Sequence record: OQ992561.1
Reading direction: 5' to 3' (one strand)
Length of the DNA: 64,000 nucleotides
The notes under the pieces are model-generated. The model searched no databases, was not told the origin of the DNA, and saw only the letters and a program-made list of their open reading frames with translations. Positions within the stretch are counted from its first letter, which is position 1. The number at the start of each line of letters is the position of its first letter. Positions 1 through 62,616 of this stretch are shown here, piece after piece. The translations under genes and the position numbers were made by a program.

Positions 1-1881
1 ATGGCTGTTAACGAAAACGAAATCGGCACCGTTCAAACTCAAGCTACCGCTCCGGCTCCGCAACCCACTGCACAGCGTCAAGCTCAACGTCCTACTGGCG
101 CGCCTGGGTCTACTACTGGCATTAACCATCTAATGCGTCGCTCTGGTCGGCTAGATGGCTCTGATGCTCGTTCAGCAGATGCCCTACAAGTATTCACTAA
201 AGTAAAAGAAGAAGCAATCCGCCATCAGGACCTACCTGATGACTTCGATATCCATCGTTTCGATCGTGATGCGCAACAAGTTGGTATGGCTGGTCTACTC
301 ATTGTTAAACTAGCTAAAGATATCAATGGTTCCATGAAGGCATTCGTTCGTACTCTAGTACTCGATAACCTACCTGGTACTCGCATCCGTCCCCGTACCC
401 ACAAAATCAACAATGGTCTAACTGATGACATCATTGAAGAGAAGGTACTACCGCGTGATGTATTCACTGCTCAATACTGGAGCAAGATCGGCGAGTTCCT
501 ACGGAACCGTTACAACATCCCTGGTCTAGAAGTACTATCTGCCGGTCCACGTGCAGTGTATGCTGACTTCGACTTCAAAGATGAACTAGCTGTTAAGAAC
601 CTACTAGTTGAATCCGTTAATATCTGTGAAGATGCTATTGCGCGTCGTAACAATGAGACTCCGTTCTCTATTGCGACCCACATCAAAGCAGAAAACGAAC
701 AGCTTACCTGCAATCTAGACTACAATGGTATTCCGGTTAAAGATAGCTGTGGTAATCCGATCCGTTCTGACCTGGTCATCTCCACTAGCCGTGGTAAGAA
801 AACCAACGTACCTGAGAACGAGTTCTATGATACCGATAGCCAGCTAAACCAAGTTAGTCTATTCGTAGATCTACATTGGACTCCGACCACTGGCCAGCAA
901 CAAGGCATGTTTGGCGTAACTCTACCTGGTGCAGTTCTACCTCCGCAGTTCACTCCTTACATCGTTATTACTGACGTTCGTAAGGCATCCTGGATCCAAG
1001 CATGGACTCTAGAAATGTGGCTGTTCGCGCTTGGTAACGCGTATCGTGCAACTGCATCTCAGGCATGGGCTCGTACTCTAATGCCGAAGATCGCTACTAG
1101 TAAGATGCGTGATATTGGTGCACTTGGTTATTACTCAGAGCTAGGTAAAGCGATTGAAACTCGCACCGAAGCATTCATGGCAGACGACAGCAACTTCGTA
1201 ATGCTAATGAACAAGATGGTTAACCAGAACCCTGCATTCCAGATCGATATCGATCCAATGGGCGACAACTCAGCTATTGAGCAAGTCATCCTAGATGCAG
1301 CTGGTGGCGTAAACCAAGCTCGTGCAGTTAGCCTGATCTTCCAAGCTCTAACTAACCTATACGGCACTGATTTCCGTCAGTTCTATAACCTAGCTGAAGC
1401 TGGTCCGATTATCTTTGACAACCATCATGAAGTAGACCTCGGTCACTACACTGATGAGCATGGCGAACTAAGCGACCGTCGTGATCTTGACGTTCTAGGT
1501 GCCATGAACATGTCTGAAGGTAATGACCAAGAGTGGAAGACCTGGTATGCTACTCAGGTAGGTAATGACCACATTGTGCGTCGTATGAATAACAGTAAAG
1601 GCTTCGACAAGATGTACCTAGGTAACGTTACCTATACTGGTCGTGCTCGTCGTCTAACCTTTAACCCGAAATTCATCACCGCAATGGATGCCGCAGCAGC
1701 AGCCGCTGGTGTAACTGTAACCATGGAAAACCTAATTACCAACTTCGGTCAACAGCGCTTCGCTGGTTACACCGGTATGGGTAACATGGCTGTTTCTGGT
1801 AGTGCACAAGTTGGTATGGCTGGCAGCATGGGTCAAACTTACGGCGCTCCTTCCTATAATGCACCGGGTACCTGGTACTAA
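1..1881 (+). CDS. chmA: Chimallin, major phage-nucleus shell protein (phiKZ gp54 / 201phi2-1 gp105 family)
   Basis: 626 aa. Q/A/P-rich N-tail, then [44 protein letters not shown] and TYTGRARR, matching chimallin as I recall it. Directly upstream of nvRNAP beta'. Confidence 0.93.
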
Positions 1882-1883
1882 TA

Positions 1884-2250
1884 GGAAATACCTCGGTAGA
1901 TAGGGATGTTAAATAAGTAACATCCCGATTCTAATACTGCGACCCTGGTTCACTTCGGTGATAACGGTTAGGAGTAGGTTCCGTGAAGTAATCGACTAGT
2001 GGACTTAGTCTAGGTCGACCTATCACTACACGAGGATGATAGATCACTTAACCGAAAGGAGTTACTCAAAAGGTGACGTGTGATCAAAAACTACAATGGA
2101 TGGTAAATGATACTAGTGCCGGTATGCTACAGAGAAGAGCGGAGGTTAAGCTTTGTAGATGACGCTAGGATCGGGCCAGGCTCCGTTGGTGGTCCATTGT
2201 AAAAACTGATATAGCGGCTCCTTCGGGGGCCGCTTATATCTCCTTTTTTT
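1884..2250 (+). ncRNA. Candidate structured non-coding RNA / 3' UTR element ending in an intrinsic terminator
   Basis: No ORF. At least 9 helices, UUCG and GAAA tetraloops, nested long-range stems and a possible pseudoknot (see findings). Confidence 0.6.
2208..2250 (+). terminator. Rho-independent terminator
   Basis: gatata-gcggctcc TTCG ggggccgc-t-tatatc followed by a T7 run. Confidence 0.85.
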
Positions 2251-2275: not shown

Positions 2276-3412
2276 ATGGGTCTTTATGCCAAAGTTGTTG
2301 ATCATAATGAAGTTCATGATCAATTTACGGGTAAACGAATTTATGCCAATGATTACAATACGAGTAACTCAGATGAGAAAGAAGAATTTGATAGGCATTT
2401 CTATTCTCATTTCCAAGATTCAGAAGCAATTGAAAGTAGTGTAAGCTGTGATTGTCGAGCAATCGAAGACGCACATAAACTCGGAGTAATCTGTGATATT
2501 TGTAATACTCCAGTTGTCAATACTTCTAGCCGTCCTATCGAACCATCAATGTGGGTTCGTACACCAAAACATGTACGTAGCCTAATTAACCCACGTTTAA
2601 TCATTATGCTAACCGGATATCTAGTAACTAAAGAATTCGATTTCTTAGCATATCTAACTGATACTTCTTATCGATACGATGTAGAATCTATTGGTTCTAA
2701 GGAAACACGCAGGAAAGTAGATAGGCTACTGCATCGAGGATTTGAAAGAGGATTAAATCACTTCATTGATAATTTCAATGAGATCTTCCAATTCCTACTA
2801 GATGCAAATATTATCTCTAATAATAAATCCGAATTCGCTCAATTCGTTGCTCAGAATAAAGATAAGTTATTCCCTAAATATTTACCAGTTCCTTCTAAAC
2901 TCTGTTTCGTAGCAGAATCAACCACATCTGGTACTTACTTAGATAAACCAATTGAAGCAGCAATTGATGCTACCTTAACCTTCGCTAGTATTGATGCATC
3001 ATCTGTACCACTTAGTCCAATTAAAGCTCAGAATAGGACTATGCGAGGACTAAGACTATATGGCCAGTTCTACGAGATCTACGCAAAATCACGAATTGCT
3101 CAAAAGCCTGGTCTTGCTCGGCGTCACATGTTTGGTGCTCGTCTCAACGCTACGGCACGTGCAGTAATCACTTCTATTAGTGACCCGCATGATTATGATG
3201 AACTACATATCCCTTGGGGGGTAGGTTGTCAATTATTAAAGTATCATCTAACCAATAAACTAAAAGCAAAGTTTAACATGACAACTCGTGAAGCATTCTC
3301 ATTTGTATATGAGAATGTACTTCAATATAACCAAATCATTGCAGATCTATTTAAAGAGCTAATTGCAGAAGCAGCCCCTTATAAAGGGATGGGTTGTACT
3401 TTTCACCGAAAT
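2276..3412 (+). CDS. Non-virion RNA polymerase beta' N-terminal subunit (gp55-like), exon 1
   Basis: Zn site (CDC...CDIC) and RRHMFGARLNATARAVI (beta' region C). Frame ends GCTFHRN at a TAA that is the intron start. Predicted spliced product is 379+36+72 = 487 aa. Confidence 0.92.
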
Positions 3413-4656
3413 TAATCTATTAAGTTAAAGCGCTACAGATTCTGGGTGTGGTAACCAGGAATCTCTAATGAGGAATTATGAATGAAGAAATAAGATGGCG
3501 TAAAATACCTGGTTTCAATAATTACGAAGTCAGTGATCATGGTCAAGTTAGGAACCTTAAAGGCGAATTAATCTCACAACACGAGAATAAGACAACTAAA
3601 GGTACTTACCTTACCGTTAACATCCACAATGATGACGGTATTAGAAAGATTCGTTATGTTCATCGTTTTGTGTGCATGGCGTTTCATGGGTTACCTGAAA
3701 ACTTTAATGAGTTGGACGTTAACCACAAAGATACCATTAAGCATAATAATCATTACCTTAACCTAGAGTGGGAAACTCGTAGCGGTAATGTTAAGCATGC
3801 ATTTATAACCGGTGCCAATAAACATGCACTCGCTGTTAAATGTACAAACATTCTGACTGGTGAAGTAAATAACTTCATCTCGATGAAAGAAGTAGCCGAG
3901 TTCCTAGAGCTTGGTCACAATAAAGGGTTACATGTCGTATTGGGTCATTTAGTTAAACCATTCAGAGGTAAATATGTATTCGAAGTAAGTGGGGATTATC
4001 ACCCACAGAAGCGTAAGAATGCAATTGAAGTTTATTGCATAGACTTCAAGACCAACACCTTTGGACGATATGTAAACCTAACGCAGTTACAACTTAGAAC
4101 CGGGTTAATTAAAGGGTCAGTGCAGGACATTTTAAAGAAACCAGATCTAAGATTATTCAACGGTGTTGTTATCTGTAGGGTCGATGATAAGGAACGGCTA
4201 TTCGAATACGTTTCTAACCTAACCCAAGAAATGGTTAACAAATCCATTGATGATTACAATAGATACAAAGCGCGTAGAGAGAAGCTACATACCACCTAAG
4301 CAATTAGTGTAGCGACTTAACTTAATATGGGTTTCCTTGTATCAGAAATGATACTCGACAAAACTTCTTGAATTGCTGGAACAACTCGTTAGGTCAGTTA
4401 GCTACAATAGTTCCGAAAGGTTCTATGAATGCTTAAGAATAACTGAATAGAGTCAATCAGCAGCTAAGATCCTAACCCGAAAGGTATGGATAAAGTTCAA
4501 CGACTAGTGCATTGGCACGTAGGGTCCAAGTGGACTCGAAGTGGGAAGCACCTTACTGGGTAAAGCCAAAGGTGAAGATATAGTCTCAACGTCTAGCGAG
4601 AGCTAGAGCTGCACGTAATGGTGCGGGTTAGCCTAACGAACTAACTGAAGATATTG
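3413..4656 (+). mobile_element. Group I intron 1 (IA2-like) in nvRNAP beta', with homing endonuclease in the P1 extension
   Basis: 5' exon ends in U and the intron ends in G4656. Splicing restores FHRN|PTLQRGS (NRxPTLH-like). Core: P aattgctgga 4371, Q aatcagcagc 4455, R gttcaacgactag 4495, S gaagatatagtct 4574. P1 is gaaaU paired with GUUUC 4331-4335. P7.1/P7.2-type hairpins follow R. Confidence 0.92.
3478..4299 (+). CDS. Intron-encoded NUMOD4-HNH homing endonuclease (I-HmuI-like architecture), apparently intact
   Basis: WRKIPGFNNYEVSDHGQVR (NUMOD4) and YVHRFVCMAFHG...VNHKD..KHNNH..NLEW.TRSGNVKHA (HNH). SD gagga upstream. Confidence 0.9.
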   Translation: MNEEIRWRKIPGFNNYEVSDHGQVRNLKGELISQHENKTTKGTYLTVNIHNDDGIRKIRYVHRFVCMAFHGLPENFNELDVNHKDTIKHNNHYLNLEWETRSGNVKHAFITGANKHALAVKCTNILTGEVNNFISMKEVAEFLELGHNKGLHVVLGHLVKPFRGKYVFEVSGDYHPQKRKNAIEVYCIDFKTNTFGRYVNLTQLQLRTGLIKGSVQDILKKPDLRLFNGVVICRVDDKERLFEYVSNLTQEMVNKSIDDYNRYKARREKLHTT

Positions 4657-4764
4657 CCAACGCTTCAACGTGGATCTACGCAGCAGTTCTTTATTACTAA
4701 AGTAAAAGATGACATTAATGATAATTCTATCAGCATGTCAGTTTTATGCCTTAAAGCGCCTAAT
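4657..4764 (+). CDS. nvRNAP beta' exon 2 (108-nt micro-exon, 36 aa)
   Basis: Translates PTLQRGSTQQFFITKVKDDINDNSISMSVLCLKAPN, in frame between introns 1 and 2. Not in the ORF track. Confidence 0.92.
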
Positions 4765-6153
4765 GGACAATTGAATAACCAAATAAGGTAAAAGACAATG
4801 GAACAAAACGGAGTAGTGTCCGTCTTTGATCCGGCTTCATTTAAAATTGAATGGCGAGATATTCCTGGATACTCAGCTTAAGAGGCTAGTAACTTAGGAA
4901 CGATTCGTCATAAGCGGTTAAATAGAATATGTAATTTCTTCCTTACTAAAACATCAATTGGGACATATCTCAATATAGGTGCAAAAAATGATGAAAAGAC
5001 ATCAAAAAGTAAGGGAGCGCATATTCTAGTTTGTACTGCATTCCATGGTCCATCTCCTGGACCAACATATGAAGTCAATCATAAAGACGGCAACAAACAT
5101 AATAACTTACCATCCAATTTGGAATGGATGACTCGTGGTGAAAACATTGAGCATGCTTACAAAAATGGATTAAGAAAAGAAAATAGACGGGTAATTGCAA
5201 CTGATGTTACCACTGGTGAAAAGACTACTTATTACTCGATGAATGAACTTGCTCGGGTATTAGGAGTTAATAAAAATACGGTTTGGGTTATTATACGTGA
5301 CCATAAGACTAAGCCGTATAGAAATAGATTCACATTTGAATTTATTACCGGTGAGACTAAGATTGCTGATCGTGAAAGTACCAAGACAGTTTATGTTTTA
5401 GACTATAAGACTAAGACATTACATGTGTTTCATAACTTAGCAGAAATGGAACTTGCACTAGGTACTAAACGTAATAAAGCCTATTACCATCTAGTTAGAG
5501 GTAGTAAGGAAATCATGGATGGTCTGGTATTCTCATATACTGCTAATCCTGAAGATTTCCCTAAATATACTCAGAAAGAAATTGAAGCCTCATTTGGAAA
5601 ACCTAGTAATGGAAAAGGCACTCCAATTGAAGTAACTGACACCATCTTGAACACTACCAAAGTGTATCCAAGTATTCCACACTTTGCAAGAGATGTCGGT
5701 ATTAAGCATCCGAATACTATTCGAAGAGCAATCTTTGAAAAGAATGGGGTGCTTGATAAATACCTTATTAAGTTAATCAAGTCTAGTTCCCCCAATGAGT
5801 AATCATTGGGATGAGTTCTCTCTAATTGCTGGGATATCCTGTTAAACTAATCTACCACTGCGAGTCGAAAGACAAAGCCAAGGTTTGAAAAAGATTAGGT
5901 AGGGACAATCAGCAGCCAAGCTCCGTAACATTCCATTTAGGAATAGGAGAAGGTTCAACGACTATTACGGTATCAGGTGCGCCGGTCCTAGAAATAGGAT
6001 GTAGAGTCAAGTGACTCGAAATGGGAGACACCCTACTCCGAAAGGAAGGGTGAAGATATAGTCTGGTCTGCATGGCGACATGCAGCAGGTGGTAATTATC
6101 ATGTGGTAATTATACTACCGGGTATGGATTAACGACCCATACTGAACATAACG
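4765..6153 (+). mobile_element. Group I intron 2 interrupting the catalytic N|ADFDGD motif
   Basis: Exon ends AAU and the intron ends G6153. Core: P 5824, Q 5907, R 5953, S 6052. In the P1 extension, aataaggta 4782-4790 pairs with taccttatt 5761-5769. Confidence 0.92.
4798..5802 (+). pseudogene. NUMOD4-HNH homing endonuclease with premature TAA at codon 28
   Basis: ATG 4798 reads MEQ...WRDIPGYSA*EASNLGTIR...HILVCTAFHG...VNHKDGNKHNN..SNLEWMTRGENIEHA, in frame with track ORF 5119..5802. TAA 4879-4881 sits at the conserved NUMOD4 Tyr. Confidence 0.88.
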
Positions 6154-6372
6154 GCGGATTTTGACGGCGATCAATTGAATTTAACGTTAATGCCTGATGT
6201 GTATTTAACCAAAGCAACTGAACGCATTGCTCCACATACATGGGTTCTATCTATTGATGAACCACATGAAATCTCAGGTAACCTTGAATTACAGGGTCCT
6301 GTTGTAGAAACAATTATTAACTGGGCGCATGAGAAGTATTTACCGCCATTAGAAGAATGGTTGAAGTCGTAA
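6154..6372 (+). CDS. nvRNAP beta' exon 3 (gp56.1-like) carrying the Mg-binding DFDGD
   Basis: GCG GAT TTT GAC GGC GAT = ADFDGD, in frame with track ORF 6175..6372. Confidence 0.92.
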   Translation, partial: ADFDGDQLNLTLMPDVYLTKATERIAPHTWVLSIDEPHEISGNLELQGPVVETIINWAHEKYLPPLEEWLKS

Positions 6373-19973: not shown

Positions 19974-20280
19974 AATTAATATCCATCCATCTCTCAGGAA
20001 TGGATATTGTCAAATTGCCTGCTTGATCTCGAAAGAGTCAAGTAAATCCTCTCTAATTGCTGGGACATCTCAATGAGACAATCAGCAGCGAAGCTTTCCA
20101 GAAATGGATTGAACGTTCAACGACTATCCGGTTACGCGGAGTACACTCAAGCGAGTGGAAATGGGAGGGACCTGACCACCTAGGGTGAAGGTTAAGATAT
20201 AGTCTGGTCTGCATGGTGACATGCAGCTGCCTGCAATACGAGAGGCGGGGTAAGCGTAGCGAACTTACCTGAACATAACG
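19974..20280 (+). mobile_element. ORF-less group I intron 3 (307 nt) in nvRNAP beta
   Basis: Splicing restores HGG|KGVICKV. P1 is ggU|aatt paired with aattGcc. Core: P 20055, Q 20080, R 20115, S 20194. Terminal G20280. Confidence 0.93.
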
Positions 20281-61654: not shown

Positions 61655-62047
61655 ATGTCATTTATAATTGCTATATGTCTAGCAGTAATGGTAATAGGTA
61701 TTTTTACTATTGGATCTAAAGTTAGAGCTTTATGGTATCTTATAAATGGTAAAACTTTAAATGAGCATAGGAAATGGCGCGCAGACTTCAATGAAGTAAT
61801 TCAATGGCTTCATGAAGGTGCTTTCTTTACTAAATCAGGTTTATTTAAAGATCAAGCTATCTCGATTAGATTGTGTGAGCTATCGCGCAGTAAGAAATTA
61901 TTCCCAATGCTACGGCGTTCTAAGTTCGAAGTTATAACTGCTAAGGTATTTAGGGAAATAACTGGTGAGCCTTCAGAGTATAATTATTACTTGAAATTTA
62001 ATAAGGCTTATATTGGCTTCTACAATGCTAATCCAGAAATCCAATAA
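61655..62047 (+). CDS. N-terminally anchored membrane protein (130 aa)
   Basis: SD AGGAGG before ATG 61655. Begins MSFIIAICLAVMVIGIFTIG. Confidence 0.7.
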   Translation: MSFIIAICLAVMVIGIFTIGSKVRALWYLINGKTLNEHRKWRADFNEVIQWLHEGAFFTKSGLFKDQAISIRLCELSRSKKLFPMLRRSKFEVITAKVFREITGEPSEYNYYLKFNKAYIGFYNANPEIQ

Positions 62048-62127
62048 GCCTGGAAATGCACCCAATCTAATGAGAAGGTCTATATTCTGATCTTCTCATT
62101 AGTACTCTTGTAGAAGGAGCCATTATC

Positions 62128-62616
62128 ATGGCTGAATTTATTATAGGTAAAGATATATTCAATGTACCTGGTGATCTTTATCTAATCACTGTTAATGTTG
62201 TTGGCGTCATGGGCGCTGGTTTAGCTAAATCGTTTAAAGAAAAGTATCCTGAACTTTTTGAAAGATACAAACACGATTGCAAAAAGAGAATTATTACTAT
62301 TGGTAATCCGGTTATTTACAAAGCATCCGATGGCAAACGTTTTATGATGTTTCCCACTAAGGATAATTGGCGGAACCCATCTCAAATTAGTTTCATTGAA
62401 CGTGGACTAGAGTGGATGATGGAGAACGTATCGGATTCTGCGGAAAATGAAGAAGACTGTATTCATCCAGATTGGAAAATTATCATACCACCTTTAGGAT
62501 GTGCTAATGGCGGACTAGATTTTTCTGATGTTAGAACTATCATTGAAGACTGGTCTAATCACATGCCTAACCAAATTGTGGTTGTTTATCCGCCGTGGAT
62601 GGATTCATCGGTTTAA
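62128..62616 (+). CDS. DarG/TARG1-type macrodomain (ADP-ribosyl glycohydrolase-like), gp104-like
   Basis: VNVVGVMGAGLAKSFKEKYP, FPTKDNWR, ERGL, PPLGCANGGLDF. Confidence 0.85.
   Translation: MAEFIIGKDIFNVPGDLYLITVNVVGVMGAGLAKSFKEKYPELFERYKHDCKKRIITIGNPVIYKASDGKRFMMFPTKDNWRNPSQISFIERGLEWMMENVSDSAENEEDCIHPDWKIIIPPLGCANGGLDFSDVRTIIEDWSNHMPNQIVVVYPPWMDSSV

Follow-up and report, generated by a model that had tools for sequence, protein, structure and literature searches.

A modular, conserved structured RNA behind the chimallin gene of phiKZ-type Pseudomonas jumbo phages

The region directly behind the stop codon of the chimallin gene (chmA) in a phiKZ-type Pseudomonas aeruginosa jumbo phage encodes a real, conserved, multi-domain folded RNA. 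This element spans positions 1884-2250 of a 64,000-nucleotide stretch of sequence record OQ992561.1 (hereafter the window) and lies in the 394-nt gap between chmA and the gene for the N-terminal part of the beta' subunit of the non-virion RNA polymerase (nvRNAP), the counterpart of phiKZ gp55. It consists of a four-way junction (the 5' domain), a three-way junction (module C), a rod (module D), and a terminator-like hairpin (Table 1). The structure belongs to the plus-strand RNA, is under selection, is modular, and has been exchanged horizontally between phages.

An initial annotation, made from the letters of the window without database searches, had noted that the gap behind the chimallin stop codon folds almost throughout, and shuffle tests bear this out with z values near -4. 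The minimum free energy (MFE) of 1884-2250 as plus-strand RNA is -121.5 kcal/mol, compared with -102 +/- 4.9 kcal/mol for dinucleotide shuffles (z = -3.96), and none of 100 shuffles folded as well. An independent set of shuffles gave z = -3.7 for the plus strand and -2.8 for the minus strand, and five coding control windows of the same size gave values from -0.1 to -2.1. Every module adopts the same fold alone as it does within the full sequence, and the modules are separated by A-rich linkers. About nine conserved G-U pairs, which can pair only in plus-strand RNA, and the weaker fold of the minus strand together place the structure in the plus-strand RNA. The gap had also been described as GC-richer, which is true relative to the window (0.452 versus 0.374) but not relative to chmA (0.476).

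Comparison with relatives provides the evidence for selection on this structure. The secondary structure was fixed from MFE folds and alignments, and pairs were then counted on 15 full-length sequences (14 of them distinct). Standard pairs fill 98.8% of the 1529 pair cells. Two-sided changes occur at eight pairs in eight different helices, compared with zero or one after the partners are slid by 1-3 columns, and the observed covariation score was reached by none of 500 shuffles. The covariation that the initial annotation had proposed to look for is therefore present. Between the window and phage PA1C, 33 of 152 unpaired positions differ (22%) as opposed to 24 of 220 paired positions (11%), and pairing is retained at 18 of these 24 changed paired positions.

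The gap is kept at 96-100% identity in about 50 phiKZ-like records and is approximately 84% identical in the Pawinskivirus group (PA1C, PS119XW, HPP-Temi, HHBS36_1, and BRkr). When the window is compared with PA1C in 100-nt steps, identity is 0.52-0.67 in chmA and 0.58-0.69 over most of gp55, versus 0.82-0.90 across 1901-2200, and the two ChmA proteins are 48% identical. In these alignments, the noncoding gap stands out as conserved, whereas the genes on either side of it have diverged almost to saturation.

Table 1. Positions of the element, its predicted helices, and the flanking genes in the window
Feature	Positions	Strand	Basis
chmA (chimallin, ChmA, phiKZ gp54), coding sequence	1..1881	+	list of open reading frames (ORFs)
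5' domain, four-way junction	1891..2035	+	MFE, pair counts, covariance model R3
5' domain, closing helix	1891-95/2031-35	+	
5' domain, arm A	1897-1900/1930-33 plus 1903-11/1918-26	+	
5' domain, arm B	1935-38/1973-76, 1940/1971, 1941-44/1966-69, UUCG hairpin 1950-53/1958-61	+	
5' domain, arm C	1983-88/2020-26 (A2022 bulged), 1992-97/2013-18, 2000-04/2008-12	+	
Module C, three-way junction	2042..2085	+	pair counts, covariance model R2
Module C, helices	stem 2042-47/2080-85, junction UUAA, CC-GAAA-GG mini-hairpin 2052-59, hairpin 2061-66/2072-77	+	
Module D, 110-nt rod	2092..2201	+	covariance model R1, pair counts
Module D, P1	2092-2100/2193-2201	+	
Module D, P2	2109-18/2163-72	+	
Module D, P3	2127-34/2151-58	+	
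Terminator-like hairpin 2208-21/2226-40 (UUCG loop, U2235 bulged), then UCC and U7 (2244-50)	2208..2250	+	fold, pair counts
nvRNAP beta' N-terminal gene (phiKZ gp55), exon 1	2276..3415	+	ORF list, tblastn with PA1C homologue, relatives' annotations

Module D presents the most telling pattern of substitution. All three of its stems have been rewritten between lineages, and three unpaired blocks are unchanged: UGGUAAA (2101-07), AAGAGCGGAGG (2135-45), and CCAGGCUCCGUUGGUGG (2176-92). Among 11 sequences from three lineages, 16 of the 27 nested pairs show compensatory changes and pairing is kept in 98.9% of cells, in an alignment that was fitted to the covariance model and is thus biased towards the structure. 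Rewritten stems around invariant unpaired blocks fit specific recognition, by a protein or a small ligand, or catalysis, rather than a generic stabilizer. Module D also has what is expected of a riboswitch aptamer, namely a conserved core with invariant junction nucleotides. Two of the stems drawn by the initial annotation, 2092-2100/2193-2201 and an 8-bp stem at 2127-34/2151-58, are confirmed and conserved by pair counts; a third, drawn at 2113-18/2163-68, is real but extends to 10 bp (P2). A candidate pseudoknot at 2138-44/2181-87 could form, and its seven pairs are invariant in all 11 sequences and therefore uninformative for covariation. An alternative hairpin at 2174-78/2190-94, which would turn this contact into a kissing loop, is paired in 86.8% of cells, does not covary, and is not supported.

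Covariance model R1, built from phiKZ and Pawinskivirus sequences of module D, matches only phiKZ-like phages, the Pawinskivirus group, phiHQ, and the IMG/VR contigs L026 and L036 (E 1e-18 to 1e-38). The latter two are jumbo-phage contigs with a ChmA that is 43% identical (E 1e-18 to 1e-22). A scan of IMG/VR for the exact module D motif returned only three known contigs, and the same motif in JGI metagenomes and 185,579 genomes gave solely GC-rich matches that lack the remaining motif and were read as chance. No second copy of the element was found in the window by nhmmer or blastn-short. A weak R1 match at 62028-62140 on the minus strand (E 0.26), where a weak nhmmer match also falls, is a 12-bp hairpin in an 80-nt gap between plus-strand ORFs; it lacks the invariant blocks and is probably due to chance.

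In module C, the two-pair GAAA mini-hairpin (ACCGAAAGGA) is invariant and sits in the invariant context ACUUAACCGAAAGGAG. The annotated helix 2042-47/2080-85 around this loop stands, and pair counts show that it is conserved. Model R2 matches PhiPA3 (E 4.5e-12) and a Phabio-like lineage in Logan assemblies (contigs L072 and L073, E 1.4e-6). In Phabio the match has an E value of 0.14 and is located in the same chmA-polymerase gap. On contig L060, whose ChmA is 56% identical, the value is 1.9; this contig carries ACCGAAAGGA and the hairpin that follows it.

Compensatory changes in the 5' domain affect the closing helix, both arm A helices, and both arm C helix groups (helices 6 and 7). Here the helices seen initially fared unevenly. 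By pair counts, 1903-11/1918-26 is conserved, 1992-96/2014-18 is conserved in a slightly longer form (1992-97/2013-18), and the core 1950-53/1958-61 holds for a UUCG hairpin that had been drawn at 1948-65. An enclosing helix at 1884-93/1976-82 is lost in the Pawinskivirus group and gives way to the closing helix in Table 1. A hairpin at 2020-25/2037-42 is partly broken in the Pawinskivirus group and poor in PhiPA3, as judged from an alignment by eye, and it competes with helix 1983-88/2020-26, for which the support is better: this helix covaries (U-A to C-G) and has seven unbroken base pairs in PhiPA3. Both 1884-87/1979-82 and 2020-25/2037-42 were rejected as weaker and as broken in relatives. 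Model R3 matches only P. aeruginosa phages, namely phiKZ-like phages, the Pawinskivirus group, and PhiPA3 (E 8.5e-11). PhiPA3 (L002 2497-2778) retains the four-way junction, but arm C contains an insertion of 157 nt and arm B has been rewritten; the 3' module that takes the place of module D is unrelated to it.

The modules occur in different combinations. Both phiHQ and PhiPA3 carry parts of the gap element, and module D is the sole module in the gap of L026. Phage phiHQ is approximately 100% identical to PA1C in both flanking genes, yet its four-way junction has been replaced by a Psa21-type module of about 300 nt that aligns to the Psa21 gap at 65%, with conserved blocks and compensated stems (for example, CCCAGU/ACUGGG versus CUCGAU/AUCGAG). 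The phiKZ-like phages SL2, PA7, T2P, and W10-2 (L008-L011) carry a module D haplotype that is nearer to the Pawinskivirus group than to phiKZ (window positions 2108-2160), which indicates recombination between genera inside the element. Judged from these haplotypes and replacements, modules are swapped between co-infecting Pseudomonas jumbo phages.

The chmA-polymerase gaps of phiHQ (L003 2194-2500) and Psa21 (L013 4256-4690) hold a second structured RNA family, with the crossing, pseudoknot-type helix order CCCAGU..UACGGU..ACUGGG..ACCGUA and no match in Rfam. Further gap types of 140-280 nt, each with its own hairpins and closing helices by eye, are present in L021, L024, L025, L028, L030, L014, and L016; stems recognized in this way include AUCAUGG/CCAUGAU in L024 and CCGGUGGU/ACCACC..CCGG in L021. 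Overall, structured inserts appear to be common in the chmA 3' untranslated region (UTR), which would make it a general hot spot for them.

The order of chmA, terminator, about 25 nt, and polymerase gene is constant among relatives, and the content of the gap varies. A hairpin and U-run close every chmA-polymerase gap examined, whether the element is present or absent. In the window, the hairpin folds with z = -5.3, and a simple terminator scan misses 2208-2250 because the U-run begins 3 nt past the stem. The initial annotation had given the element its own terminator; the hairpin is confirmed, but it is not the element's own, as relatives without the element have it too. Gaps of 76-96 nt that are essentially terminator are found in D6, Noxifer, five IMG/VR contigs, and nine lineages from Logan, ENA, and NCBI. 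Gaps of 394-536 nt are found in phiKZ-like phages, the Pawinskivirus group, phiHQ, PhiPA3, and Psa21, and those of other relatives measure 128-270 nt; the lengths are overestimates for L021, L024, L025, L026, and L036, in which the first ATG taken by the ORF finder lies downstream. The polymerase gene starts with ATGGGTCT in the window, and the homologous sequence of these same five contigs begins with TTG (TTGGGACTACA...). As far as can be read from these gaps, what stays constant is the terminator, and between it and the chmA stop codon the structured modules form an optional cargo. As is typical of small RNAs (sRNAs) derived from 3' UTRs, the 3' end of the element would coincide with the mRNA's own intrinsic terminator, since hairpin 2208-2240 and U7 come directly behind the modules.

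A known family was not recognized. Searches of 1780-2330 against Rfam 15, both with gathering thresholds and down to E<=10, returned no relevant family, in agreement with the initial expectation of an undescribed RNA; the best scores of 12-18 bits, compared with thresholds of 42-55, are driven by the terminator. The classes without a match include riboswitches, ribozymes, RNase P, tmRNA, 6S, GOLLD/ROOL/HEARO, and T-box. Nine related loci gave no Rfam match at E<=1, and nothing relevant was found in the Psa21 gap. ARAGORN found no tRNA or tmRNA genes in 1800-2300. Likenesses to group I cores, T-box RNAs, CRISPR repeats, and the 16S 3' end were considered, confirmed by no tool, and dropped.

A conserved peptide could have explained the region instead, and none was found: among five relatives there is no ORF with a conserved start and frame, and most relatives, among them SL2, PA7, and the Pawinskivirus group, have lost the ATG at 2107 that opens ORF 2107-2202. 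Small genes for hypothetical proteins are annotated in HPP-Temi (L004) at 274-381 and 527-715, and likewise in HHBS36_1 (L006). Such small ORFs annotated within the element overlap with chmA, the terminator, and the start of the polymerase gene and, being unconserved as ORFs, appear to be spurious.

The window is that of a phiKZ-type phage. Its bases 1600-2500 match KTN4, ANB1, and OMKO1 at 100% identity and phiKZ (AF399011) at 99.3%, and the equivalent position in AF399011 is the window coordinate plus 45,647. ChmA is 100% identical to its KTN4 counterpart and 99.7% identical to phiKZ gp54, and Pfam PF25677 is found on its homologues. The chmA stop codon TAA (1879-1881) is followed by TAG, and the ribosome-binding site AGGAG of gp55 lies at 2265-2269. 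Only 25 nt separate the U-run from the gp55 start, which is too short for a separate promoter, and a promoter scan found no sigma70-like promoter on the plus strand of the gap and a single chance site on the minus strand. In phiKZ, chmA has early and middle start sites and is a member of a multi-gene operon (dRNA-seq; PMC8244752), and PHIKZ054 is present in many transcription units (ONT-cappable-seq; PMC10914365). For the RNA polymerase homologue in 201phi2-1, the search for promoters yielded none (PMC11512511).

The gp55 homologue comprises three exons (2276-~3424, ~4657-4776, and ~6151-6363) split by two group I introns, each with an ORF (3478-4299; 5119-5802) and an Rfam core (4313-4608; 5765-6085). 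Its counterpart is intact and free of introns in PA1C and PhiPA3, and splicing of the predicted phiKZ introns was not seen under the conditions of the ONT-cappable-seq study (PMC10914365). A third group I intron core is located at 19998-20226 (84 bits).

No mention of the element occurs in the main texts of the phiKZ dRNA-seq (PMC8244752), Grad-seq, and ONT-cappable-seq (PMC10914365) papers, an antisense oligonucleotide (ASO)-knockdown preprint, the 201phi2-1 transcriptome paper, or a 2026 jumbo-phage review, although an entry in a supplementary table is possible. The Grad-seq paper describes two other noncoding RNAs (ncRNAs), the ONT-cappable-seq paper lists 17 5'-UTR candidates (PMC10914365), and the 201phi2-1 transcriptome paper reports a conserved sRNA upstream of gp182 homologues. 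Given the covariation, the absence of Rfam, tRNA, and ORF matches, and the silence of these main texts, the initial description as an undescribed structured ncRNA or 3'-UTR device is supported.

Our preferred though still tentative reading is that the modules are specific partner-binding structured RNAs carried on, or processed from, the chmA 3' UTR. The RNA is a plus-strand ncRNA that is most likely made as a 3' extension of the very abundant chmA transcript and ends at the hairpin and U7. Each module would be a protein-binding site or an aptamer-like core, and by riding on chmA the modules would be made early and in bulk. Their action would be post-transcriptional, whether they stay joined to the chmA mRNA or persist as stable 3' fragments that the terminator protects, and would consist in recruiting or sequestering a factor of the host or the phage. 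For this reading we infer transcription with chmA, processing, and both the existence and the identity of a partner.

The modules are optional and distributed like cassettes, and the four-way junction is confined to P. aeruginosa phages, both of which suggest an accessory role tied to the host or to competition. A broader proposal, which is doubtful, is that the chmA 3' UTR of Pseudomonas nucleus-forming phages serves as an expression slot for exchangeable RNA cassettes, which would be either aptamer-like or decoy RNAs made in bulk within the first minutes of infection against a host-specific factor or a metabolite-sensing gate on synthesis of the phage's own RNA polymerase. Such a factor might be a defense protein, a protein of RNA metabolism, or a small-molecule signal that is neutralized or hijacked. 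If so, the cassettes would be RNA-only accessory genes traded between co-infecting jumbo phages.

Several points weigh against a partner-binding role. Only about three to four lineages are effectively independent, and recent horizontal transfer, rather than constraint, may be behind part of the high identity. The pairs of the candidate pseudoknot show no variation. The element is absent from most ChmA lineages and is thus not needed for expression of the shell or the polymerase in general; this absence makes a core role in the phage nucleus less likely. Finally, in all three lineages module D lies 6 nt ahead of the terminator, which a role in cis on termination explains equally well.

That last point leads to an alternative that we judge rather unlikely, in which the element would act in cis to govern read-through into the polymerase operon. 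With or without the other modules, module D would alter how often the phage RNA polymerase stops at the terminator and thereby set the ChmA:nvRNAP ratio, either as a ligand-sensing, riboswitch-like attenuator or as a put-like RNA that renders the phage polymerase terminator resistant. Its constant place as the last module, 6 nt before the terminator in three lineages, and its aptamer-like invariant core would suit such a device, as would the missing room for a promoter in the 25 nt before gp55, the lack of a plus-strand sigma70-like promoter, and the failure to find a promoter for the 201phi2-1 homologue (PMC11512511). However, no expression platform is visible. A riboswitch of this type would have mutually exclusive terminator and antiterminator pairings that overlap the aptamer, whereas P1 lies 6 nt from the terminator without overlap, and the only pairing of module D with the terminator strands seen by eye involves a shared GGCUCC hexamer (4-6 bp). 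Furthermore, terminator-only relatives share the gene order, and riboswitch and T-box families are unmatched at E<=10.

It is unlikely that the element is merely a passive stabilizer in cis that shields the 3' end of chmA mRNA from host 3' exonucleases and RNase E and so raises early ChmA. ChmA must be synthesized at very high levels, and a densely structured 3' UTR with a strong end hairpin is well placed to help, but the terminator alone does that job in most relatives. Invariant unpaired blocks and conservation across genera above that of the coding flanks would also not be expected from a stabilizer.

Small ribozymes are frequent in phage genomes, and a possibly pseudoknotted module D with invariant unpaired nucleotides could cleave itself or act as another kind of catalyst and in this way process the chmA-gp55 transcript. 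This seems very unlikely, as no ribozyme family matches at E<=10; the nearest, Hovlinc, is on the minus strand (16 bits, E 1.1) with its core almost unaligned.

It is highly improbable that the element is a group I intron that has degenerated or lacks an ORF, or some other selfish mobile RNA or DNA, even though group I introns with homing endonucleases abound in this genome, two of them splitting the adjacent gp55, and even though the modules move between phages. The initial annotation had already set group I introns aside, and the searches agree: Intron_gpI (RF00028) is unmatched at E<=10 in 1780-2330, whereas the three true introns of the same window score 84-87 bits. The C-terminal tyrosine of ChmA is invariant in nine relatives and the stop codon precedes the element, so there is no exon to rejoin. 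The helix order differs from P3-P7-P8, and the gp55 exon up to the nearest intron is approximately 60-70% identical to PA1C, which leaves no co-conversion tract. A small protein gene or a DNA-level signal such as an origin or packaging site is scarcely credible, because the short ORFs at 2107-2202 (plus) and 1931-2047 (minus) and the small hypothetical proteins annotated here in some relatives are outweighed by unconserved start codons and frames (ATG 2107 among them), by substitutions that keep base pairs rather than codons, and by G-U pairs that function solely in plus-strand RNA.

Among nucleus-forming phages, phiKZ serves as the model, with chmA as its key early gene. The element sits directly behind this gene, shows stronger cross-genus conservation than the genes for the shell and the polymerase, and is traded as modules. 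If factor binding or read-through tuning proves true, there would be an RNA layer at the earliest and most vulnerable stage of jumbo-phage infection. Engineered insertions or tags at the 3' end of chmA would disrupt the element.

Among known systems, the element most resembles 3'UTR_PHIKZ298 of phiKZ and ncRNA1 and ncRNA2 of PAK_P3, which are likewise structured RNAs that come right after a stop codon, end at the gene's terminator, and are conserved within a genus (Grad-seq and ONT-cappable-seq papers). Those RNAs were found by expression and are approximately 100-210 nt with one or two stem-loops, whereas the element is about 320 nt plus terminator, has three covarying domains, and is conserved across genera well above its coding flanks. 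Like attenuating riboswitches and leader RNAs, module D is a possibly pseudoknotted RNA of about 110 nt with invariant junctions directly upstream of a terminator and gene; unlike them, it has no competing antiterminator that could be seen, no Rfam riboswitch match, and a terminator that is independent of the core in relatives. The put RNAs of phage HK022 are cis-acting antitermination elements of about 70 nt with two stem-loops that act on host RNA polymerase, and they share with the element the position of a structured phage RNA just ahead of terminators that have to be passed for downstream genes to be expressed. The group I introns of the same genome (RF00028; 4313-4608, 5765-6085, and 19998-20226) are also large, structured, neighboring, and mobile between co-infecting jumbo phages, but the element differs from them in not matching their covariance model, having no exons to join, and having a different helix topology. 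GOLLD and ROOL are orphan large structured RNAs that are often phage-borne and have families in Rfam. The element is similarly a multi-domain phage RNA supported by covariation; it has no Rfam match and differs from them in size, fold, and setting (an mRNA 3' UTR as opposed to the vicinity of tRNA genes). The element belongs to a broadly known kind, the orphan structured RNAs of phage UTRs, and within it represents a new family or, strictly speaking, a set of at least three families, one per module.

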